Shown: positions 9,319-50,500 of the stretch, piece after piece
Numbering within the stretch: position 1 is the stretch's first letter
Layout of the letters: each line of letters starts with the position of its first letter
Assembly: GCA_907165135.1 (NCBI GenBank)
Contig: OU015566.1
Location: 1,302,001 to 1,366,000 of the forward strand
DNA: 64,000 nt
Source of the DNA: Oikopleura dioica
Taxonomy: Eukaryota > Animalia > Chordata
Direction of reading: 5' to 3'
Notes under the pieces: model-generated
The model's database searches: none
Told to the model about the DNA's origin: nothing
Seen by the model: only the letters and a program-made list of their open reading frames with translations
Translations under genes and position numbers: made by a program

Positions 9319-12300
9319 TTAAAGCTCGAAGACAGGCTTCTCGCAAATAAGTGATTTATCATCAATGAGTGCTTTTTCACCATCGGCACATGGATTAGGA
9401 CAAGTTTCAATGAAATCGAATGATGTTTCTGAAATTGTTACATCGTTGCAAGTTTTGTCTCCAGTATCCGAATGTTGATTTAATCGACACGTGCAGAAAT
9501 GATCAGAGCTAGAATAAAAGTTATTATGCTTTCTTAGCATTAGTCATACCCAAAGAAATCTCCAATATCGAAACAGCATTGTGGATATTCTGATTGTCCT
9601 GGCAAACATTCCGAGTGATGGACTGTGTTACATTTTGTATTTTTATCATGAGAAGAATTATCTTTGCCATGGCAAAAGCATGGATCGTCAACGTGATATA
9701 CATACTCTGAGTTACAGCAATCTTTATTGATGATTCCTCTGACAGAGTTGCACTTCGCTCTCTTCGGAACACTTGTTCTCTTCCCGGTCTGATGATAAAT
9801 ATACTGTCCAAGACTGAATTCAGATTTATCGGAATCGTGTTTTGCAGAGATCAGCTCTGAAGCAAGTTGGAAACAGTCGCTGTCGACAGATGCATGAATG
9901 GCGTCATCGGAACCGAAGTCAAATTTGAGAGCCCCGCAGCATGATGGAAAACAATCTTTTGAAATATTACATTCATTTGTCACGTCTCTGCAGGCGAGAC
10001 TGTCAGTACTGCCCTCGCATGGATCGTATCTTATCCTTGAATAAAAATTAAGATTTGATGAAAATCATTTTGAAAACTTACCATTGGTCGCATAAAGTGT
10101 CTTCCTTAAAAGTAAGGGAGAAAGTTTCTTTCGCTTTAAGACAGCATTCTCGTTTTTCATGAATACTTCCGCTATTGTAACAATGGCTATAGCCGCATGC
10201 AGAAGCATGATCGGCCTGTTCGTCCACGTCAACAGTTTTTGATTTACAATAAGAACAACCCTTATTTGTGCTCGTGTCACAGCATCCTCCGAAGAAATCG
10301 GCGTTATTGTTGCATTTTGAAAATTTTTGACAAGCAACTGGAGCAGGGGTCTGGATTCGCTTAGCGAATTCGCTCATGAGCGAAGCGAAGCGAAGCGAAG
10401 CGAATTCGCTTCGCTTCGCTTTCGCTTTTTCTAATTTCAATTCGCTTCGCTTCGCTTTCGCTTTTTACCAAAAATTTTCGCTCAAAATTCGCTCAAAAGA
10501 CTTCATTTCCTGAAATGATCAAGGAGAGATCTCCATCTGCTTTACTTCTTTCAAAGCAAAAATTACGCCGCTTACATCTACATCTCGTAGATAATTGTTA
10601 TTGATGATAATTACTTCCAGATTTTACAGCTGCAAAGTTTCATAAAAAGGCGGAATGATTTCCTTTACCATCAAACCAAAAAACAAACAACAAAAATGAC
10701 TTTTATTGTAAAATGCAAACATTGCAAATTTACTTGCAACCGAAACAGTCTTCATCGTCATCTTGTCGCTGACCACTTTATGGATAAAACAGTCAACGCT
10801 ATGAACCACGTAGAACTCGACTGGGAGGATTTCGAAATGGACATCTATTTCAAAGGTGTCCGAGAAAAAAACGGAGAGCTGCAAATTCGAACGTTCTGGG
10901 ACTGCGATAACAAAGACAAAGAAACCTTCCAGAAAACCTTCGAACCTTTCCAGAACTTCATTCTACACGAAAATATCTCCGACGCGATAGAAATTTCTAT
11001 GAAAAAATCAACTGAGAAAAAAGCTGCGATCAAGCTTTCGAATCTTCTTCAAAGCGTCAATTCAGCAAAAGCCGCCATCAAGGACGATCCTGAATGTCAA
11101 ATCTGCTGCAACGAAATCGACGAAAAAAACTTCGCTATCTTTATCACTCCAAATCTCACTGCCTGCCACACAAATATTGCTCACTTTGTCTGCAACTCTT
11201 GCCCATCAAATTTCACTTCTATCCCATCTTGTCCTTTTTGTCGAACAAATGGCAAGTTTGTAACTCTCCGAAAACCTCTCGAATAAAAGAATTATAATCT
11301 CAAAAAACTTTAATGATTTCTTCTTTTTAAAAAGGATTAATTCGATAAAATACTGGCTTCTGATTGGCTTAGGGACCAATTTTCTGGAATCGGCACTTAT
11401 TTAATTATTATTAATTACTTTTCAAGCGAAGTTTTTTTTAACTGTTTATTTTCATAAAATACTGGCTCCTGATTGGCTGGGAGTCAAATTTTCTAGAATC
11501 GGCTGAAGTTTAGTTATTATAAATAACTTTTCAAGCGAACTTTTTTTAACTGTCTATTTTCATAAAATACTGGTTCCTGATTGGCTTAGAGGCAAAATTC
11601 TAGCATTAGGTTTCAACTTGTTATTATGGATAACTTTTTGCGCAAAATTTTCCAAACTGTTTATTTTTATAAAATCCTGTCTTCTGATTGGCTGAGAGCC
11701 CAATTTTCCAGAGTCGGGTGAAAATAAGTTATTATAGATTATTTTTTGCGCAAAATTTTCGATAATGTTTATATTTATAAAATCCTGTCTTCTGATTGGC
11801 TGAGAGCCCAATTTTCCAGAGTCGGGTGAAAATAAGTTATTATAGATTATTTTTTGCGCAAAATTTTCGATAATGTTTATATTTATAAAATCCTGTCTTC
11901 TGATTGGCTGAGAGCCCAATTTTCCAGAGTCGGGTGAAAATAAGTTATTATAGATTATTTTTTGCGCAAAATTTTCGATAATGTTCATTTTTATAAAATA
12001 CTGGCTTCTGATTGGCTGAGAGCCCAATTTTCCAGAATCGGGTGAAAATAAGTTATTATAGATTATTTTTTGCGCAAAATTTTCGATAATATTTATTTTT
12101 ATAAAATACTGGCTTCTGATTGGCTGAGAGCCCAATTTTCCAGAATCGGGTGAAAATAAGTTATTATAGATAACTTTTTGCGCAAAATTTTCTATTATGT
12201 TTATTTTTATAAAATACTGGCTTCTGATTGGCTGAGAGCCCAATTTTCCAGAATCGGGTGAAAATAAGTTATAATAGATAACTTTTTGCGCAAAATTTTC

Positions 12301-15300
12301 TTTATTGTTTACTTCTATAAAATAATGGCTCCTGATTGGCTGAAAGCTCAATATTCTTCCATAGTTCTTGAATTGGATGAGAAATTTCCATTTTTTGCGC
12401 AGAGTTTGTTGCCATATTGATGCTCCCACTTATTTCGAGAATCTAAGAATTTCTTTCATGATTCATATTGCGCAACGCTGGTCCGGATTGCGCGCCGACT
12501 CATACTCGATAAGGATGAAAAGGGAAAACCACTCTTAGGCTTTGCGCAGCCTCAGATTGCCTTTTTCACTCATCTCAAAATGCTGAAAGGGGGGAAAATC
12601 AATTTTCCTCCAAGGAAAAAGCGGAGAGCTGAGCCAGAAGAGATTAGCTCCGACGAAGACAATGAGCAAAATCCGGATGAACCCGGAACTTCAGAGAAAA
12701 AAGACTCGGTAACATGGAAGAGTCTGGAAAATGAGTACGCTGTCCAAAAAGCTCGTAGAGATCTCGACAAAACGAAGTTCCATTTCGACGGGGGAATTGA
12801 AGGCAAATTCGTCAATGGCAAGTACACCGGCGATGTGCGATGCCTTGATCCACGGTGTAAAGCGAAAAAAAAGGAATTCATCTGCCAAGATACCAAATCG
12901 CGCCAACCAATTAACTTGAAGAAACATGCTAGTAAGCTAAGCTTCTATAAACACTTGCGCATTTTTATTCTAGTCACAGTTCATTGCGAAAACAACCATG
13001 TCATCCTGCAGAATCAAGCCCCAATTACAAGTTTCGCGAAACCAAGACAGGTTCAAATCAAAAAAGCGACAAGGAAAAGCTGACGGAGATGGAGGCGACC
13101 ATAATCTGCAAAGAACATCTTCCATTGACATTTTTCGCGAAGTAAGAGTTCTTTTTCTTCCTTGATTTCAAATTGCGCAATTAATAGGGAGTCCCTGAAG
13201 GCTTACAGGGCCCAACTTTTGAGTTCCGTCAATGTCGACCCGCAGTGTCTTGACCAGCTTCACTCCTCTAGCTATCACTACATCAAAGAGGACATGAAAA
13301 AGCAACAAGAGATTCTCCGAACTGTTTTGAAAAAGGAGTTGCCAACATTGCTTGAACAAGGTTTGTCGTTCACAAAATAATTTTGCGCAATCTTCTATTA
13401 GGTTTCTGCGCATTACAAGCCGACCATAAATACATCAAGTCGCGGACACATGAGGATAAGAAGAACGGTATGGCAGTTCTTGTCACCGTGAGCTGCGAAG
13501 AAATCTTCTCATCATTGATTCTGGACTTCCGCGCAACTGATTCGACATCCTATGAGTCCACAAAGAACGATTTCGAAGAAATATTAGACGTAAGTTTCTG
13601 AGCAAATTCTGCGCAAAAGTTCTAGGAAAATTTGCGCAGAATATGCTGTTCAGTCTTGCGCAAAATTAAAACAAAAATTAAGGAATATGGCTTGTTGCCA
13701 TTATGGAGATCCAAGATGGTCGCCCTCGTTGGAGACTCAAAATTCGCCAAATTCGAAGACGACTCCGACTTCATGGTGGTCTGTCTCCTACATACCATCA
13801 ATCGCATCGTCGACTCCATGGAAGAGAAGGCGTACATCTTTGGCATCTACAAGGAACGATTCAAAGCTGTTGACAACTTCATTTCTGCGATCGCCAAGTT
13901 GCGCAAGCCTCTTGAAAGTTCCTCTGAAGATTGTCCACGAACTGTGAACGCGTACCTGAAGAAACTTTCGGAGCAAGGAGTTCCCGCGATCGACAAGAAA
14001 AAGATTCTGAAAGGACGAATGCGATATCCTGAGAAGAAGCTGACAGACGCTGAAATCAAGGAAGATTCATCGGTCAAAAAATTTCCGAAGTTTAGAGTAA
14101 GGCTGCGCATTTATTTATTAAATTCTCATCATCTTCTTTTAGGACCATTACCACAGCATCCGTTTTGGCGCAAAAGCTGAGAAATTCGCAACTCTTTCGG
14201 CAAACATGCGCCAAATTGTTAGCTTGAAGCTGAATCCACCGCTTGGATATTCTCACCTTCTTCATCAAGTCTCGCTCCCAGAAATTCAATTCATCGAAGC
14301 AAATCATTTTTTGCTCAAAGAAATGATGTTTGTGCTCCGGCAAACTGAGAGGAATGATTCGAAGGTATTATTTTTGCGCAGATCTTTCAAAACTAACAAT
14401 TCAAATAGGTTGTGCAGAGTCTGGTGATATACGAAAAGCTGATTATCTTCCTTGTTGGCGCAAAAATGCTGCTCTCGATCACGGTCAAGAACGCGCAGAA
14501 ATCGTCGACAAGTTGGCAAAGACAGCGCTCCAGAAGACTCTCCGTCTCATCTTCGGGAAGTCTTATCTACCAGCCCACAAGAAAATTTCTAAAGACGGAA
14601 AGGAAACCTTCGTGGAAGCTGAAATAAAGACGCTTCATCAAGCTGAGCCTCCGCGGATTTCGAAGCCTCAGATCACGTCGCTCTTCCTCTACTGGCCAAA
14701 CCGAAGAGTTGACCTCTACCGAGCCTGTGAAGCGATTAAAACAAGAGACAACGAAGACTTTTTCTACCAAAACAAGTTGATTCTGGAGGAAGCCGTCACC
14801 GACTGGCAAATAATCGCGAGAAACGAGATCCATCAACTTGCGCAAAAATTGCAATTGGGAGAAGAGCCGGCGACGGCAAGCCAAGTGACAAGAGCGGTAG
14901 CCAATCTAGATGTCTACGATCCACGAGATGCAGTTGCGCAAACTGAACCAGCAAGGCGATCAGAGATGTCTCTTTGGGAGAAAGTTGAGAAAGAAATCAA
15001 CGAGTACTTCAACGATGGTGATCACTGGCGAGCTTGGCTGTCTGCGCAAAATGTCGACTCTCCCAATTCAGAGTCGGTGTTGTTCGAATTGTTCTGGCGG
15101 GATCAGAAGTCAAAATGGCCAATCCTCTCAGCCATTGCGCAAAAGGTAGAGAAATTGTTTTTAAATTTAACAAATAAATAAGTATGCTAACATGCCCGTT
15201 ACGAGCGCGGAAATAGAACGAAACTTCTCCACCATGAGTTACGATTTGGAGAGTGGAAGATCAAGTCAGAAGGCTCAACACACCGGAATGGTAAATCAAC

Positions 15301-17219
15301 GAGCAAACGCAGGCCCATTCGAAGAAGCAATCAAGGAAATCAAGAAGAAGCAAAACAAAAACTAGTTTGCGCATAATTATCACACTGAAAAATTGAAAGA
15401 ATAAAAGATTTACGATAAAACGGCCGTTTCTTTTTGCGCAAAAATGTCTCTGTTGTTTGTTTGTTTTAAGATCACTTATTTTTAAACGAAAATTTCAATT
15501 TTATTCACTTTAAAAATTTCTTCAGAAATTTTCGCTTTTTTTCGCTTTTTTCGAAAAATTTTCGCTTCGCTTCGCTTTCGCTCACGAAATTTTGATTCGC
15601 TTCGCTTCGCTTTCGCTTTTTTTTAAAAAAAAAAATTCGCTTTCGCTTCGCTTTCGCTTTTGATTTTTGGCCGAAATCCAGACCCCTGACTGGAGTCATA
15701 TCAAGACTTTGCTCCTCTCCCCATTTATACCATTCATGAGATTGATAAAGTCCAATACAACAATCTAATATAATCGATGAATAAATAGAAAAACATTTAT
15801 AAAGTTTTTGATATTATAAAAGAGGATATTTTAAGAATTACCAAATGTTTCATCATCATTTCCAGCATTTTTGCATGTATCCTTGTAGTCGAATTTATCA
15901 TTTGAATCCTTACTGCACCAGCCTGTGGTTTGTGCTCCGCAATAATACTCTCTTTGATCATCATTGTCAAGATTAAGAGTATTCCGTTTGTAAGAGCAAT
16001 CTTTGTCCTTGTTAAATTGGCAGCTTGCATCAGAAGGATTATTGATACAGTGGCAATCATGCCATTTGCCATCAGTATAATCAGGTGTGAACTGATTGCA
16101 ACAAAGAGGGTAAGAATCTGATTCAGCATTGCATTCAATTTCTTCTTCTTTGTGCAAGCATTGTGTCCGACCAACAATTTTTTGAGTTGCTTCTTCATAT
16201 CTTGTGAATTCTTCTTCAACATGTGAATATCGGATTTTGCAAGTCAAGAGCCCATTAATTTCAGTAAAACCTTTAGCTGTCTCGAAACATCGCGCATTTG
16301 TTTCACTGAGAGCAAGTTCTCCATCGACGAATTTAGCTGTTTTGATCTTCATATTCAGAATATCTCCCCGTGAGGTTGTTGTATTATGCACAATCGAGAC
16401 AACATAATACGATCCATCAACCAAGTCTTCATCTTTCTCTTCAAATATAACTGGTTTGCCTATTATTCTATCCTCATAACTAGCGTACAAGCTCTCAGCA
16501 GTTGGCTTTTCATCGGTTCCGAAAAGATCTTCTGCTGCATAATTCTTCTCCAATTGAAGGTATGCCATAGGTTGTTCTCTCAGCTTAAAAAACAGGTTGA
16601 CTTCGTCGAAGCATTCATTCTGGACATATTTGAGACCCATGATACCAGTAGCACCAAAGAAAGCAGCAGCGATGGAGAGAACGATAGTTCCACCGAGGAA
16701 CATTCGGAAAGTGATTGATCGACCACGTCGTCGAGTTATGATATCCAAAACGAAAGCAATAACAAGACCACAAATGAAGATCAAAGCAACAGCAAAGAGG
16801 AATGTGTTCAAATAGACACCCGCCTTGAAAACGTTGAAAGTTCGTTCATCGGGTTCGTCTTCGCAGTAAGCAGCAAGAATGAGGGCACCTTAAATTCCGT
16901 TTTAAGATGGCCTTCAAAAATTTCAAAAAGCAACTGAAGAAAAGAAATCGAACTTACCAGCAATAAGAGTCAAAACACCCATGATGGAAATTCCACCGCT
17001 AGCTCCGTCGTCTCCGACATTTTCTTCATCTTCGTCTCCGCTTCCAACTTTCGCACCTCTAGCCCATCGGTTGATGAAGAAGCTCGTTAGTTTGAGACCA
17101 GCGATCGAGACCTGGATTGCAGCAAAAATCATAAAAAGCCACAAATCATCTTGAAAATTTGGCTGCAGACAAAAAATGTAAGCGTCCTGCCACGAAGTAA
17201 CTTCGCGGACAGAACTCAT
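9319..17219 (-). CDS. Multi-pass membrane protein with a long Cys-rich C-terminal region, interrupted inside an exon by the hAT element
   Basis: N-terminal TM helices (17219-16650) followed by Cys-rich exons. Removing 10344-15688 and one TSD copy joins ...EEQSLDMTP to VACQKFSKCNNNADFFGGCC in frame. Confidence 0.8.
10696..11286 (+). CDS. Intronless C2H2-finger plus RING-finger protein carried inside the hAT element
   Basis: CKHCKFTCNRNSLHRHLVADH at the N-terminus; CQIC...CHTNIAHFVCNSC...CPFCR at the C-terminus; 196 aa; AATAAA at the stop. Confidence 0.85.
   Translation: MTFIVKCKHCKFTCNRNSLHRHLVADHFMDKTVNAMNHVELDWEDFEMDIYFKGVREKNGELQIRTFWDCDNKDKETFQKTFEPFQNFILHENISDAIEISMKKSTEKKAAIKLSNLLQSVNSAKAAIKDDPECQICCNEIDEKNFAIFITPNLTACHTNIAHFVCNSCPSNFTSIPSCPFCRTNGKFVTLRKPLE
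11345..12400. repeat. Tandem array of about 10 x 108-bp units inside the hAT element
   Basis: CTGATTGG recurs at 11360, 11469, 11577, 11684, 11792, 11900, 12008, 12116, 12224 and 12332. Most units also contain TTGCGCAAAA. Confidence 0.95.
12580..15365 (+). CDS. Intron-containing hAT transposase
   Basis: BED-like finger (VRCLDPRC...NLKKHA-VH); putative catalytic D in LQADH and LVGDS; CxxH (CLLH); C-terminal KWPILSAIAQK-YANMPVTSAEIERNFS. Two frame breaks (~13050-13080, ~14350-14465) need very short or non-canonical introns, or are homopolymer frameshifts. Confidence 0.9.
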
Positions 17220-38399: not shown

Positions 38400-41300
38400 G
38401 CCAAAAACTCCAACTGGGCTTCTCAAATTGTGTTTTTGTTGAAAATTTTGCTGCCCTTGTTGTTGCTGTTGATTTTGATTATTCTGCTGGGAGTTTTGTT
38501 GTTGTGAGTGCTGCGGTTTTTGTTGAGAAATCTGCGGCTGTTGGGCTTGAATTGCTTTCACAGGTCTGCCCATTTGGCCTTGCACTTCTGTTCCTTCTGT
38601 GCTGAAATCGTATTTGGAGCTAAGTTGCTTACCTTGCAAGTGCATCGGCACGCCTCTTCTCAGCGAGCCTTCGACGCCGAATTTGTAAATTATTCCGCGG
38701 TCGTTTCGCATCATGTCTACCACGGAAAAAGCGATTTCGACCTGAAAACTCTCGATTAAAAATCTTTGTCTCATTATTTATAAAATGTATGCGAAAGCGC
38801 AACCTAATAAAGAAACCCCAGCTCTCAGGCTGCAAATTGCAGTCTCGCAATGCGAAAAATTGCTAGTGAGCCTAAGAGATTATGGTTTTCTAAGTGCGCT
38901 CACGATTTTTCAAGCATGCTCTTATTTCGTGAAATACAAGCTCCGTGTCAGCTCATTCCGCTTTTTTCTTTCAAAATCGTATTTGTCTTTATCAATCCTC
39001 GAAGTTCGAATCCGCCTGTCAGTGGTTCATCGAGCTCGGAGAAAAAAAAAAAGATTTGTGACTTCAAGTTTTGACAGGGGCTATTCTAACTGTCAAATAG
39101 AGGCCCTAAAGTTTAGATAAAAAAGAACGCTTCTGGATCCTTAATTTTCCCGAAAATTATACCAATATATTTGATTATATTCAGAGTCGTAAACTTTGCT
39201 TTATTTCTACTGAGCTGAGCTGAGCTGAGTGAATATTTCTCTGACCTAAGCTGAGCGGGCTTTTTTGAGAAATCATTGAGCTGAGCTGAGCTGAGCTGGT
39301 CTTTTACAGAAGTCATTGAGCTGAGCAGACCGACTTTAGAGCTTAGCTGGTTGAGCTGAGCTGTTTTTTTACTGTATTTTTACTACTAGAATAATGTTAT
39401 GATGCTCATCTGAGCTGAGTGACAATTGTGCGAGCTGAGCTGAGCTGAGCTGATCAGAACAGAGTCATGTCCAAAATCATTGAGCTGAGGTGAGCTGAAA
39501 TGAGTGGTAATTGTCTGAGCTGAGCTGAGCTGAGTAGACGAGATCATTTATGAAAATCACTCGTCGCTCAGCTCACTCAGCCAGCTCAGCTCACTCAGCT
39601 TACCAAAACCCCAACTCTGATTATATAATATTATATAATATAATTTATTTTATTCAGAAAATCTTGAAAAAGAGCTAGAAAAACTCGGAAAATTGTCTTC
39701 AAAATTCTCTCCTGGGAAAACGTGAAAGAAGCTTACCTCGTTCGTTGAAGAGACGTAATTTGGAGGGCGTTTGTCGCCACAGTGAAATTGCTTTGAATAG
39801 GTTCTCGCCGCACGCTCGACAGGTGAAGAAGCCATTTCGAATAATTCTTCAATCAACTGCCTCTTTACCGACAATTTATTACGTGCAGGCAATTAGTGAC
39901 GGGCCCAAGAAAAAGGAAGGACACGTTAAGTTCATTAATCGCTACCGATTTGGTCCCGTCAACCCCTATTGGGCCAGAAAATGGGCTGAGTTCTAGCTCC
40001 CGCGAAAAATTGTTTATGAATTTATAATTTGCAGACTTTGGCTCACAGACAGGGTTTTGGTTATTACAGTTGCACAATAGCAAAACTTACAATATCCAAA
40101 TTGTTTGGTAAAGTATTACAGTATTTTCTTCCTGTAACTCGCCAAAAAAAATTTCTTATCAAAAGATAAAAATGCTGTAAACAGGAGCACCTTATGCTCT
40201 TTCCACGTGATCAATTTTTTTTATCAGTGCTTTTTTTACAGAATGTATCGTCTAATGAACCTTATCAGCGATATACATAATTTATCACGTGTTTTACAAA
40301 ATATATCTCGGCGAAAATTTCAAAATACGCGGAGATTAGTGGAAAAACACGAAATGACTCGTACGTGGCTGCGAGGCTCAGCTCCGGAGGAATTTGAAAA
40401 TAACAACTTGTTGTTCAAAGGTGCTCTGAACAACGCAACTGTGAAATAAAACAAAAAAGGGGAAAATAGTATCTTATTAAGGGCGTCAACATCGATTCGA
40501 TCCAAGTTTTGAGGATCATTTAGGTGCCTTTCTTAAGGGTACTACCTTCGATTTCCAAAATGATGAAGTTGCGGAAATCAAAGGTAGTACTCTTAAGGGT
40601 GTCCCCAACGATTTTTTTAAAACAGGCTATACTTTGAGCTATTTTTTATAGAACTTTCTGAAGGCTTTTCGGCTAAAAGAAATATACTCACTATTATTTA
40701 GACCCTTTTCTATGCCATAAATTTGGCAGAATTTTGAAATTGTAATCTTTTAATCCCCTACCGCTTCTTCAAAGAGTTCTGATTTTTCTATTCTGACCAA
40801 TCTTTGAGATCGTTTTTCTCGAGTTCTACAAATTCAATTTTTAAATTTCGAACAGATCCTGATTCCTTGAACGCTCCTCTATGCCATAAATTTGACGGAT
40901 TTTTAAAATTTATCTGTATGCATCTGATACGATGCATTCTTTGAAGTAACGATTATGCTGAAGTTTGAGCTCGATTCTAGCGCTGTTCCTGAAATTCAAT
41001 TTTTCTCATTTTTACAGGAATAATAGTTTGATCTATTTTCAGTCTCCCGGTTCGCTCATATTTTGCGTTGATAAGACCCTTAATCCCTTTTTCCGGCGCC
41101 AAAGTGCAGGTGTTTGCGACTTTTGGCGCACTGTTTGAAAGTGAAAAATTTGTGCTATCGTATTGATATAGGTATCATTGAATAGAGAATTTTTCAAGCT
41201 CTCAGAAAATATACAGGTCGATATATAAAATCGAAAGTTTGAAAATGACACTTTTTACAGTGCATTTCTATCGAGCCGTAATGCATTAGCGCTGTCATAG

Positions 41301-47569: not shown

Positions 47570-50500
47570 TTAATGGTCATCTTTGGTTATTGCGCAACAA
47601 GCAAGACGAGCGCCAGCTGCACCTGTTGAAGCTTTTTGGGTTTAGCAAAGATATATATTCAGAATTTTCAAAATTCAAAGAAAAGAAAAGTTTTTGATTG
47701 ATTTTTCGAACCCTGGCCTGGATCGCGGTCGGGATTTCCATCATCAGGCGCGGCATGGAGGACGATGCCCCGGTCGCCGATGAAAACTGGACTTTCTTCG
47801 TCTAGAGAAAGTATCTTTTTGATGATTTTTTTGCCATATAATACAGAGTTGCAAATTTTGATTAATTTTTCTGAGCTGAGCTGGCCTATTTTGGAGGTCA
47901 TTGAGCTGAGCTGAGCTAAGCTGGTCTTTTTCAGAGGTCATTGAGCGGAGCTGAGCTGAACAGACCATTTTTAGGAGAGTTGAGCTGAGCGGACCATAAT
48001 TAGAGCTGAGCTGATTGAGCTGAGCTGAGCTGTTTTTTTACTATTTTTTGGGAGTAAACTTGTATTAAAATCATTGAGCTGAGCTGAGCTGAGCTAAGCG
48101 ATAATTGTCTGAGCTGAGCTGAGCAGAATAGATCATGTTCAAAAAAAATTGAGCTGAGCTGAGCTGAGTGAAAGCTGTCTGAGCTGAGCTGAGCAGATCA
48201 GATCATTTTCCAAAATTACTGAGCTGAGCTGAGCTAAGCCACTGTTCAACTCACTCAGCCAGCTCAGCTCACTCAGCTCAGCGAATTTGCAACTCTGATA
48301 TAATATAATATAATTTTTGTTCAACCAAGAACAAGATGGTCATTTCTAGGGCTATTTCTAGAGCACGAATCTAAAAATAATGTCTGCACGGCTTGAACCA
48401 TTTCCTGATCAAAAATATCAATCGTCGCTGCGCCAGCATCAACCAAAATGTTTCCAAGGTCTCCAGCATGTCTAAAAATAAACTGATCCGGATTTTTTCC
48501 GACTACAAATAATGTACCGATCTGGGAGCGCGGCTATTGGAGGCCCATGAATTTGATCGGGATTGGAAGCAAAGTGGCCACCCGTAGCGGCGCATTTGTC
48601 AGATGGATCGCTAGACGAATGGACGTGGAAACCGTGGTCTCCGTCGACAAAAGCAGGGTCAGAGGAGAAAATCGTTCCGTTGATATGAACTCCTCGGAGA
48701 CCATCAATCATGGTTTCTTGCAAATGAATCGTTCCGTTTACTTGAACTTGGCCAGGAACAAAATCGCAGCGGTATCTTGACAAAGCTGGAAAAGCTCCGT
48801 CATCTATAATTTTAGTGAGGCACGTGGCTTTGAAGAAATAAAACAAGGTCAATTTGAAAATTTGTTTTGAGACAGAAATCCTCGACAGAATTTGTGTTTA
48901 TTCTGGCAAGGCTAAAAAACGAAGAATTAATGATCTTGTCATGCAAAAAATGACGTTCCCTGACAACTGTCAATCAAGGACTTCTTGTAGTGGTTTTCCT
49001 ACTGTTTTCGCTTCGAAATATGGGATTCTAGCGCGCGTGGTCGACGTAATTATGCTCAGTGAGCCGTGACGCGCCCAACGCCAAGGCTTTCACTCCATCA
49101 TACCTTGACAGCTCGCCCCTCTCTATTCCAGCGTTGGCGATATGGCCAACGCCGAGTTCATACGACCAAGTCTAAGTCCGTGCCACCGATGGGTGGTGTC
49201 CTACACTATAAAAACGACTGAACCTCTATAATTTTATCATTCTTTTCCCTGACTTCACAGGTATAACATAAAATATAATATATATATTTTACTATTTTCT
49301 GCTCACACCTATCAGGGTTAATAAACATATTCGAGATTGATTCCCGTGTTCCAATTACTTTCAGTATAAAACCACCATATATTTTGGTGACTGAATTAAT
49401 CGGTACGCCCAACAAGAGAGATATAAAAAAGATACAAGAGATAAAACATCCGTAAATTTATCAATGACGATCCGTGAATACATACTTATTTATCATTTTT
49501 TATTCGATAAAACGGGCATTGTTTTGAATCCTTAGGCAATTTTACCCGATTTTCTCGATTAGTATGATAATAAGTTTTACTTCCGGAATAAAGTTGATAT
49601 TTTTTTAATTCGAAAAACGGAATCTCATTGCTCTCAAATCCGAAAATCGAAAAAAAATCACCTCAACCGGAAATCAAACTGATGATCAAATCCCTGAAAA
49701 CGACAACTTAAAATCAATGTGTTCTTCATGATAATTACCAATCAAATGATCGCTTATCTCAGAAGAAATCATCAAGGTCGTCATGTTCCAAATCCTGAAA
49801 GAAGAAATTCAAAGTTCCTTGATTTTAATTATCATTCCGGGAAGACTTTAGATTTGAATTCACATAGAAACTCATTCCAAAGAGGTGCCGAAATTCGTGT
49901 ACGGTTCTGCTATGCAAATGAACCTCGGCCCATGGAACTGGTCAAACGGGAAATAATATTGCTCAATCTTCGAAATATTTCTCAGCGTGCTACAGAATGA
50001 TCTATTCTCATTAACAGAATATAATAGGCGCTAATGATCAATCAAGAGTTTAAAGCTCAAAACATTCACAGCTCTGCTCGAAGCTCGAAAAATCGTCTTT
50101 ATTGCATCTAATGATATAAAAAGAAGATATCAAAAATTATGAGACGAAGAATTAACCAAGAAATGATGAAGAAAAATGACGGACATTTCATCACAAGCGC
50201 AATACAAATTTGGTTTAAAACAATCTTGCTTAATGGACTCCGATATGCTGCTCATCAATTTTGGTTGCAGTAGAACAAGCATCCGCTCAGATGTTCCCGC
50301 TCTTCTACTTGCACCTCTTATCAAGAACCGTCAAATGTGCCACAAAAGTGTGCAAATTTCGACTCACTCATTGAGGCCACACTTCAATCTTCATCACCAA
50401 AGTAAAGCTGAACCTGCTCGTCGTTCAGAACCTCACATGTCCAATAATGTTAACGATCCCTGCTCATCAGATGTAATCAGAACGGAAAAATTGAGACTCT

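Follow-up and report, generated by a model that had tools for sequence, protein, structure and literature searches.

A TGCGCA palindrome saturates the transposase units of two unrelated transposon families in Oikopleura dioica

The transposase genes of two unrelated families of DNA transposons in Oikopleura dioica carry the hexamer TGCGCA at ∼20–30 times the frequency expected by chance. In hAT-1, the element analysed here, the motif does not extend over the entire element: its sites all lie in the transposase transcription unit and in the 108-bp array that precedes it. The motif is strand-symmetric and conserved, and it is shared between the two families. We tentatively favour the explanation that the array consists of binding sites for a dimeric, probably host-encoded, DNA-binding protein that acts on the transposase unit; the binding, the identity of the protein and the effect of its binding are what we infer from the pattern described below.

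Structure of hAT-1

At positions 10344–15688 (+ strand), the window (the whole 64-kb stretch of DNA analysed) contains an element with the short TIRs and 8-bp target-site duplication of hAT transposons: perfect 14-bp TIRs (CAGGGGTCTGGATT) lie at 10344–10357 and 15675–15688, and the flanking direct repeat ACTGGAG (10337–10343 and 15689–15695) is clear over 7 bp, its 8th base being ambiguous. This element, hAT-1, is single-copy in the genome at the DNA level. It also has the short subterminal repeats of hAT elements at both ends, TTCGC/GCGAA arrays to which no strand was assigned. The left array (10358–10520), the expected transposase-binding zone, forms inverted pairs with the right end; there are 18 TTCGC/GCGAA in 10344–10520 (102 per kb vs 2.4 per kb internally). 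The right array (15500–15674) belongs to an end (15500–15688) with 14 copies (74 per kb). Neither array contains TGCGCA, and the same is true of the passenger gene (10696–11286, + strand), an intronless ORF of 196 aa that encodes a C2H2 + RING protein with weak RING matches.

The passenger gene is followed by a 108-bp tandem array (11345–12356, + strand, 9.4 units), each unit of which has paired CCAAT boxes (CTGATTGGCT...CCCAAT), and by the intron-bearing hAT transposase gene (12580–15365, + strand), which has paralogs at 31–37% identity. Its approximate exons 1–4 are at 12580–12931, 12974–13142, 13188–13363 and 13403–13589, and exons 5–8 at 13683–14096, 14143–14364, 14410–15155 and 15191–15365, all on the + strand. 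The reading frame seems to shift twice at A-runs (∼13059–13062 and ∼14459–14465), which could reflect real breaks or homopolymer errors of the Nanopore-based assembly; with these two apparent frame breaks hAT-1 may be inactive. Protein searches were run exon by exon, and the last exon alone matched PF05699 with E = 0.019 and 15.2 bits (cut-off, 21.4 bits). The last intron splits this domain; on inspection by eye, the C-terminal hAT dimerisation motif (...FWRDQKSKWPILSAIAQK / PVTSAEIERNFS...) can be recognised on either side of it. Zero RNA-seq reads mapped to 11300–15415 in three oligo-dT runs and one single-cell run of unspecified strain and tissue, a result that is uninformative; reads fell on the terminal TTCGC repeats alone, which are also present elsewhere in the genome.

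TGCGCA in the transposase unit

An exact search found 34 TGCGCA in the 64-kb window, compared with 12.3 ± 3.2 in shuffled sequences, and 26 of the 34 lie in a single saturated domain (11639–15440; no strand assigned). These 26 sites comprise seven in the 108-bp array, three between the array and the ATG (12396, 12469 and 12543), eight in introns, six in exons (13407, 13900, 14839, 14935, 15043 and 15136) and two after the stop codon (15368 and 15435). The preliminary description had put the motif in most of the 108-bp units; it is present, as TTTTTGCGCAAAATTTTC, in units 3–9 and is absent at that place from units 1–2, which have AAGCGAA there. Site 12396 is an eighth copy just beyond the annotated end of the array.

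In the non-repeated DNA (12390–15450), there are 19 TGCGCA against 0.97 ± 0.96 (maximum, 5) in 1000 dinucleotide-preserving shuffles, and the exons alone carry 6 against 0.83 ± 0.86 (maximum, 5) in 5000 synonymous-codon permutations of the exon pieces. The two most enriched hexamers in the region are TGCGCA and GCGCAA. The estimate of at least ∼25 sites in 3.8 kb where fewer than one was expected is thus borne out, the enrichment surviving both the shuffled and the codon-preserving nulls, and the site positions listed at that time were all correct to within one base (13633, 13657 and 15043 for 13632, 13658 and 15042).

No TGCGCA was found in 10344–11638 (the left end and the passenger gene) or in 15441–15688, so that the earlier picture of a motif spread over the whole element does not hold. 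The sites are not subterminal, and an end-binding motif of the hAT transposase was rejected on these grounds, the TIRs of the second family being free of the motif as well. A further suggestion, that TGCGCA is read by the BED finger of the transposase, is unlikely, as both ends carry TTCGC/GCGAA arrays instead. Within the domain, the sites show no helical or nucleosomal phasing (Rayleigh p 0.2–0.9 for periods of 10–11 bp), and the gaps between them are near-exponential (CV 0.86).

The introns of hAT-1 hold 8 TGCGCA in ∼345 nt and the exons 6 in 2424 nt, a ∼9-fold difference in density, and six of the seven introns have at least one site, in agreement with the initial remark that nearly every transposase intron carries the motif. 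About half of the introns of the related element hAT-2 carry it too. Such a distribution, together with the match between the saturated domain and the extent of the transcription unit, would suit a function at the RNA level, in which UGCGCA with its U/A flanks in the transposase pre-mRNA binds a splicing or export regulator or copies of the motif pair with each other. Several sites have the sequence TTTTGCGCAG and either coincide with 3′ splice sites or resemble them, and one intron of the second family ends in ...TTTTGCGCAG. Intron 4 (13590–13682, + strand) contains three copies (13610, 13633 and 13657), and two adjacent ones pair into a hairpin of −29.9 kcal/mol (z = −4.8). Tissue-restricted splicing is known for the P element, and this is the pattern that an RNA-level regulator would resemble. 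However, hairpins were rejected as a general role because intron 4 is the only one that folds: the six other introns fold no better than shuffles (z > 0) and those with a single copy are unstructured (z from +0.3 to +1.1). In addition, the sites are at no fixed distance from splice sites, the flanks of the motif mirror each other and show no bias towards either strand of the gene, the seven sites in the upstream array are probably untranscribed, and the density in introns is equally explained by the absence of coding constraint. We consider an RNA-level function rather improbable. The array sites, located 200–950 bp upstream of the ATG and beside the paired CCAAT boxes, fit a promoter function at the DNA level.

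Shape and genomic distribution of the motif

The consensus is a strand-symmetric palindrome of ∼16 bp, aaTTT-TGCGCA-AAAtt, with the half-site GCAAAAT. The position weight matrix derived from 103 sites is mirror-symmetric irrespective of gene orientation, as expected for the double-stranded DNA site of a dimer. Of the 103 sites, 70 have T at −1 and 61 have A at +1. The full TTGCGCAA is present in ∼45% of sites and occurs nine times in hAT-1, where 0.06 occurrences are expected. This 8-mer, at the centre of the consensus, is known as the canonical C/EBP site (PMC9630826), a palindrome in which the half-sites TTGC and GCAA abut; positions ±2 favour T/A, unlike the R/Y of optimal C/EBP sites. The genome has ∼29 bZIP_2 matches, the best of them at C4:10683154–10683309.

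Two known motifs were considered and rejected. An E2F site (TTTSGCGC) would need C or G immediately before GCGC, but of 153 GCGCAA only 18 are preceded by C or G and 131 by T, and there are only two TTGGCGCAAAA variants in hAT-1. The male-specific core promoter element of O. dioica, TCTAGA at 40–50 nt upstream of the TSS (PMC6389100), is a different hexamer that occurs in the element only at 11492 and 14905; the paper that describes it makes no mention of GCGC motifs.

The density of TGCGCA is 0.17 per kb in the genomic background and 5.6 per kb in the islands. There are 274 occurrences of TTTGCGCAAA in 64.3 Mb (130 for the control) and four of the perfect 14-mer. When the 64-Mb genome was searched with four triple-site patterns, just five islands were returned, namely hAT-1, hAT-2 and three copies of the second family, here called F2; a sixth, weaker island is hAT-4, the third hAT with a passenger gene. 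A motif of general genomic use was rejected, the clusters at C5:7833812, C4:9368193 and C1:480754 being small and not islands.

Palindromes are suited to the maintenance of a symmetric mark and TGCGCA contains a symmetric CpG, so that the sites might be targets of a sequence-specific DNA modification, or of some other system that labels mobile elements. To our knowledge, O. dioica lacks Dnmt1 and Dnmt3. The genome yielded one match to C5-methyltransferases (PF00145), which is Dnmt2-like, and no methyltransferase is encoded by the hAT-1 or F2 families. The observed/expected ratio of CpG is ∼1.1, indicating no methylation-driven decay. Moreover, the motif avoids part of the element and is common to unrelated families rather than family-specific, all of which makes an epigenetic self-mark improbable.

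Conservation in F2 and hAT relatives

F2 is a family of long-TIR transposons with three saturated copies in the genome, at C3:184099–187467 (26 TGCGCA), C5:15752740–15756089 (18) and C2:9106822–9110523 (20). It has no tblastn similarity to the hAT, its TIRs lack TGCGCA and its sites are internal only. As regards its naming, there was no Pfam match; the only leads were a language-model one to DUF7869 and one environmental homolog. The C3 and C5 copies are 74.8% identical (∼65% in the motif flanks), and their TGCGCA sites are conserved in 15 of 18 and 15 of 25 cases, compared with 22% for all hexamers (P = 5e-8 and 4e-5). An environmental relative of F2, at 50% amino-acid identity, is saturated too: there are 6 sites within 1165 bp. 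That the motif is under selection, as had been proposed, is supported by the dinucleotide and codon nulls, by its recurrence in diverged relatives and by its conservation in F2 far above background, and the comparison of copies argues for purifying selection on the F2 sites.

These data bear on the possibility that the motif has no function and results from repeat expansion, biased mutation, gene conversion or chance amino-acid usage. It is true that 7 of the 26 sites in hAT-1 are copies in one tandem array and that some sites of the C2 copy of F2 fall in a short, tandemly repeated acidic peptide (...DEDAQNFAQREPEDE...). However, the unique DNA of hAT-1 carries its own excess, the codon-preserving null fails to produce the number of sites in the exons, the F2 sites are conserved at 60–83%, and an excess has arisen again, independently, in two families and is seen in an environmental relative as well. 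An origin of this kind is very hard to credit.

Among the hAT elements, hAT-2 (C5:3441600–3444917; 37% amino-acid identity to hAT-1) has 20 TGCGCA vs 1.0 expected, and two coding sites are common to hAT-1 and hAT-2 at homologous Ala-Gln positions. hAT-4 is less saturated, with 8 sites in 1.9 kb. hAT-3 has neither TGCGCA saturation nor a C2H2-RING gene; its two ends carry AGTCGA arrays that are inverted relative to each other. Of the environmental hAT relatives, three are unsaturated (0–2 sites in 1.5–3 kb), one of them being closer to hAT-1 than hAT-2 is, whereas the fourth, which is the sister of hAT-2, contains 3 sites within 1 kb.

The candidate reader

The motif tracks the C2H2-RING gene among the hAT elements, which hints at an element-encoded reader. 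hAT-1, hAT-2 and hAT-4 have both the gene and the motif whereas hAT-3 has neither, and the passenger paralogs of hAT-2 (41% identity) and hAT-4 (27%) have kept open frames, which suggests that the gene is a functional part of the lineage and not a chance passenger. The F2 proteins, for their part, begin with two Cx2C...Hx4C fingers. The C2H2-RING protein in hAT elements and these N-terminal C2HC fingers in F2 might then bind the sites and thereby either control the transposase gene in an autoregulatory loop or label the element, although we regard this as unlikely. It is similarly doubtful that the C2H2-RING protein dimerises through its RING, each finger reading a 3-bp half (TGC or GCA). The passenger gene is itself motif-free, and F2 contains the motif but no homolog of the C2H2-RING protein (E = 6), so that two unrelated proteins would have had to converge on one 16-bp palindrome. 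The earlier proposal of the passenger zinc finger as the reader is thus consistent with the three enriched carriers and the one non-carrier among the hATs but not with F2.

Because two non-homologous families in one genome carry the same motif, a shared host factor appears the most likely reader, and it is the reading we favour. In this model, a homodimeric sequence-specific protein would bind the ∼16-bp palindrome as double-stranded DNA, its predicted target being AATTTTGCGCAAAATT. Each element has accumulated 18–26 sites across its transposase transcription unit. They nearly fill the non-coding DNA (∼1 site per 45–60 bp in the introns, the leader, the trailer and the promoter-like 108-bp array upstream), and coding sequence accommodates them through codons that the protein tolerates, T-GCG-CAA (Ala-Gln) being an example. 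Once bound, the factor would coat or strongly activate the transposase unit, and the array could serve as a portable enhancer or an anti-silencing or insulating array, so that the transposase would be expressed wherever the element had inserted. For an enhancer, a transcription factor array that runs through exons and nearly every intron yet avoids the passenger gene is unusual.

Implications

As a rule, a transposon has a promoter and end-binding sites. Our literature search found no paper connecting Oikopleura with TGCGCA or with palindrome-rich transposons, and we found no description of an arrangement in which one palindrome saturates transposase units. The genome of O. dioica is among the most compact in animals. 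A selected motif that fills a transposase gene, down to almost all of its introns and to synonymous exon positions, and that is shared by unrelated families and rare in the host genome points to a factor linking the host with its few surviving DNA transposons; identification of the reader would make it possible to study directly by experiment how Oikopleura licenses or restrains the expression of transposases and might also supply a compact, portable regulatory array. More speculatively, and with little confidence, we suggest that O. dioica has a hitherto undescribed recognition layer of palindromic ‘address’ words on mobile elements, TGCGCA being the word for these two families, with dedicated dimeric readers. 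If so, the expression, silencing or sparing of a transposase or retroelement gene would depend on these readers, an arrangement that would amount to a sequence-coded self/non-self system for transposons.

Comparison with known systems

Short subterminal repeats bound by transposase are known from hAT elements such as maize Ac, where they include AAACGG hexamers, and lie in inverted orientation within a few hundred bp of both ends. The TGCGCA sites resemble them in being many copies of a short CG-containing, presumably protein-bound motif inside a hAT element, but they are absent from the ends, lie in the gene body and its introns and occur also in a non-hAT family; the arrays that do correspond to subterminal repeats consist of TTCGC in hAT-1 and AGTCGA in hAT-3.

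The gypsy retrotransposon of Drosophila carries 12 non-palindromic Su(Hw) sites in a compact stretch of ∼350 bp in its 5′ region, and these sites of a host DNA-binding protein shape chromatin and expression around the element. Both cases involve a homotypic cluster of sites on a mobile element, with a single host protein in gypsy and a putative one here; in contrast to gypsy, the 18–26 sites described here are palindromic and are spread over 3.3–3.8 kb through the exons, introns and flanks of a DNA-transposon transposase gene.

With the C/EBP site, the motif shares an identical central 8-mer and symmetric, abutting half-sites of the kind bound by a bZIP homodimer. It differs in having the full 8-mer in less than half of its sites and outer flanks of TTT/AAA followed by aa/tt, not R/Y, and a C/EBP-type protein is a candidate reader only.

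Arrays bound by virus-encoded dimers include the family of repeats in oriP of EBV (EBNA1) and the palindromes of baculovirus hr regions (IE1), which are tandem non-coding blocks that serve as enhancer or maintenance elements. The parallel with the O. dioica elements lies in many copies of one palindrome on a selfish element, bound, as predicted here, by a dimer. Unlike the sites of the viral arrays, the TGCGCA sites are scattered along a coding gene, and their reader is more likely to be a host protein common to both families.

TGCGCA sites in the hAT-1 transposon

The hAT-type DNA transposon hAT-1 (positions 10344-15688) has perfect 14-bp inverted ends (CAGGGGTCTGGATT) and a flanking ACTGGAG duplication, and a DNA-level search found it to be single-copy in the genome. 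Dense subterminal TTCGC/GCGAA repeats occupy the ~180 bp just inside each end. The leftmost gene is an intronless C2H2-RING gene (10696-11286; the passenger gene), followed by a 108-bp tandem array of 9.4 units (11345-12356) and a transposase gene with eight exons (12580-15365), the last intron of which interrupts an apparent C-terminal hAT dimerisation motif. Array units contain two opposed CCAAT boxes each (CTGATTGGCT…CCCAAT); unit 2 reads TCTAGA at 11492, where the other units have TCCAGA, and units 1-2 carry AAGCGAA at the place of TGCGCAA in units 3-9. The transposase frame has two apparent +/-1 shifts (~13059-13062 and ~14459-14465), both at A-runs, which may truly inactivate the gene or reflect homopolymer errors, the latter being possible because the Oikopleura dioica OKI2018_I69 assembly is Nanopore-based (PMC8008620). 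No read from three bulk RNA-seq runs or from a single-cell run fell on the hAT-1 gene; strain, tissue or silence may be the cause.

An exact search of the 64 kb found 34 TGCGCA, against 12.3 +/- 3.2 in shuffles, with 26 of the 34 located within 11639-15440. Seven of these 26 are copies in the 108-bp array and the remaining 19 lie in unique DNA. A dinucleotide-preserving null for 12390-15450 gave 0.97 +/- 0.96 sites (maximum 5 in 1000) against the 19 observed, and synonymous-codon permutation within the exon pieces gave 0.83 +/- 0.86 (maximum 5 in 5000) against 6. The excess reported in the preliminary description, whose listed positions were all correct to within one base when site contexts were checked, was thus not lost under either a codon- or a dinucleotide-preserving null. 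An unbiased comparison of k-mers ranked GCGCAA/TTGCGC (30 vs ~1) and TGCGCA (19 vs ~0.5) as the top hexamers by a wide margin. Composition is not the cause, because CpG observed/expected is ~1.1 in the TGCGCA region and in the window alike. Chance and neutral expansion can be considered excluded for practical purposes.

The motif had been described as saturating the whole element, which holds for the transposase transcription unit and the upstream array but not for the ends, the subterminal arrays or the passenger gene: TGCGCA is absent from the leftmost 1295 bp, which comprise the end, its subterminal repeats and the passenger gene, and from the final 248 bp. Its presence in nearly every transposase intron was borne out (6 of 7 introns, with 8 sites in ~345 nt). 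Three sites fall in the 190 nt upstream of the transposase ATG and two in the 85 nt downstream of the stop, so that the non-coding DNA of the saturated domain is almost filled with TGCGCA. The 2424 nt of exons contain six sites, four of which read T-GCG-CAA (Ala-Gln).

Related hAT elements and the passenger gene

Protein searches were carried out exon by exon, and these single-exon searches of the genome recovered paralogs of hAT-1. One of them, hAT-2 (C5:3441600-3444917; 35-37% identical), has 20 TGCGCA in 3.4 kb against 1.0 expected, distributed like those of hAT-1 over introns, exons and trailer, with two coding sites at positions homologous to hAT-1. A third element, hAT-3 (C5:9176015-9179661; 31% identical), is not enriched in TGCGCA and has its own over-represented word, AGTCGA/TCGACT, whose 53 copies are concentrated in the two subterminal regions and inverted relative to each other there. 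By its layout, this array shows the textbook hAT end-binding arrangement with a word other than the TTCGC of hAT-1, and the TTCGC arrays are its counterpart. The case against the transposase BED finger, proposed earlier as a possible reader of TGCGCA and now disfavoured, rests mainly on the classical end repeats being TTCGC and AGTCGA.

The C2H2-RING gene has two paralogs in the genome. One lies inside hAT-2, 3.4 kb upstream of the transposase, in a stretch devoid of TGCGCA; the other (C5:8457378, within C5:8457226-8461200; 27% identity) is followed by hAT-4, a very diverged hAT-like gene with 8 TGCGCA in 1.9 kb. With both gene and motif in hAT-2 and hAT-4 as well, TGCGCA tracks the C2H2-RING gene across the hAT copies of the genome. 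In hAT-2, the DNA separating the transposase from the C2H2-RING gene also holds a ~3 kb coding-like stretch on the same strand (C5:3445600-3448100), with an SMC-type signature (…LSGGERS… / …DKFDVYMD…), long coiled-coil stretches and only one TGCGCA; it may represent a fragment captured from a host gene, or a composite element.

In a large profile search, hAT relatives on environmental contigs varied: three had 0-2 TGCGCA in 1.5-3 kb and the sister of hAT-2 had 3 in 1 kb. The closest environmental relatives of hAT-1, in ENA ERZ23491308 (47% identity) and ERZ23491143 (39%), show the TTCGC/GCTTCG enrichment seen at the hAT-1 ends, without TGCGCA saturation.

A second transposon family with TGCGCA islands

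The motif is rare in the rest of the genome: across 64.3 Mb, the 10-mer TTTGCGCAAA is present at only 274 places. Four triple-site pattern searches brought up hAT-1, hAT-2 and three further islands, and otherwise only CGCACGCG repeats, which are unrelated. The further islands are C3:184099-187467 (26 sites in 3.4 kb; element C3:183108-187914), C5:15752740-15756089 (18 sites in 3.35 kb; element C5:15752155-15756649) and C2:9106822-9110523 (20 sites in 3.7 kb; element C2:~9106382-9110851). They are diverged copies (75% identical or less) of one uncharacterised DNA transposon family, here called F2, with inverted terminal repeats that measure ~420 bp on C3 and C5, whereas only an ~85-bp terminal match was found in C2. 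The sites occupy the interior, and the terminal repeats are free of TGCGCA. The multi-exon F2 protein, with motifs including HGKSTIDAVGGRAK and CPPCYNLRN, showed no similarity to the hAT by tblastn and matched nothing in Pfam; the sole lead is that a language model finds it similar to DUF7869 proteins. Several sites of the C2 copy fall where a short acidic peptide is repeated (…DEDAQNFAQREPEDE…), and there its protein seems to tolerate motif-encoding insertions.

F2 also bears on whether the reader, the putative protein bound to AATTTTGCGCAAAATT, is encoded by the elements themselves. The association with the C2H2-RING gene among the hATs would favour such a reader, but F2 is saturated and no C2H2-RING homolog was found in it, which leaves this alternative unlikely. 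A motif common to two non-homologous families points instead to a putative shared host reader.

Smaller TGCGCA clusters were also seen. A multi-copy 67-bp segment with three sites (TGCGCACGGAGTTCATAGTAACTCCTGCGCAAACAAAC…CTGCGCA) occurs at C1:976695-976761, C1:979217, C3:247243, C3:254328, C3:598590, C3:1684399, C3:1710071, C5:9717429 and C5:9719963; its copies are often paired 2.5-7 kb apart, which fits terminal repeats of another element family. The region C1:480754-481393 has 4 TGCGCA in 640 bp, accompanied by numerous GCGCAA/CCGCAA-like words and a single perfect ATTTTGCGCAAAAT; it may derive from a saturated element, as a remnant or in miniature form. Another palindrome, GCTNAGC, forms two similar blocks in the window, at 39214-39584 (~17 sites) and 47875-48276 (~24 sites), probably tandem repeats of another element.

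Conservation and symmetry of the motif

Identity between the F2 copies on C3 and C5 is 74.8%, and fifteen TGCGCA stand in identical columns of their alignment (15/18 and 15/25 kept, compared with 22% of hexamers overall; P = 5e-8 and 4e-5), while the flanks beside the sites are only ~65% identical. An environmental contig encoding a relative of F2, at 50% amino-acid identity, carries 6 TGCGCA in 1165 bp. Judging from the C3-C5 alignment, the palindrome is under purifying selection.

When 103 sites from five islands were aligned in the orientation of the gene, the flank consensus was mirror-symmetric (aaTTT-TGCGCA-AAAtt), with GCAAAAT the most frequent half-site; the base preceding GCGCAA is T in 131 of 153 cases. 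Since this symmetry is independent of the direction of transcription, it argues for a putative double-stranded DNA site read by a symmetric dimer, and a signal acting in the pre-mRNA, to which the many intronic sites might otherwise be assigned, appears distinctly improbable. That TGCGCA is a modification or self-marking site seems more improbable still.

The central 8-mer of the consensus, TTGCGCAA, is the same as the canonical C/EBP site (PMC9630826). Candidate readers would include the bZIP proteins of O. dioica, first among them the one encoded at C4:10683154, as well as the C2H2-RING protein and the N-terminal finger regions of the hAT and F2 proteins. Two other site types were rejected: E2F requires C or G where the motif has T, and the O. 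dioica male-specific core promoter element (PMC6389100) is a different word, TCTAGA.

A putative host binding-site array

The simplest account of the palindrome is an array of putative sites for one dimeric host DNA-binding protein, which both families would exploit, or through which both would be targeted, in the control of the transposase gene. It is suggested by a symmetric, selectively maintained palindrome that nearly saturates the unconstrained positions of the transposase unit, is absent from the ends and the passenger gene and is scarce in the rest of the genome. We favour it tentatively, giving it a little less than an even chance of being correct. Binding might result in activation, protection from silencing or, alternatively, repression.

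We found no paper tying Oikopleura transposons to TGCGCA or to any palindrome. The known analogues, namely the Su(Hw) cluster of gypsy, the subterminal repeats of hAT elements and viral palindrome arrays, each differ from the TGCGCA islands in placement or in reader.
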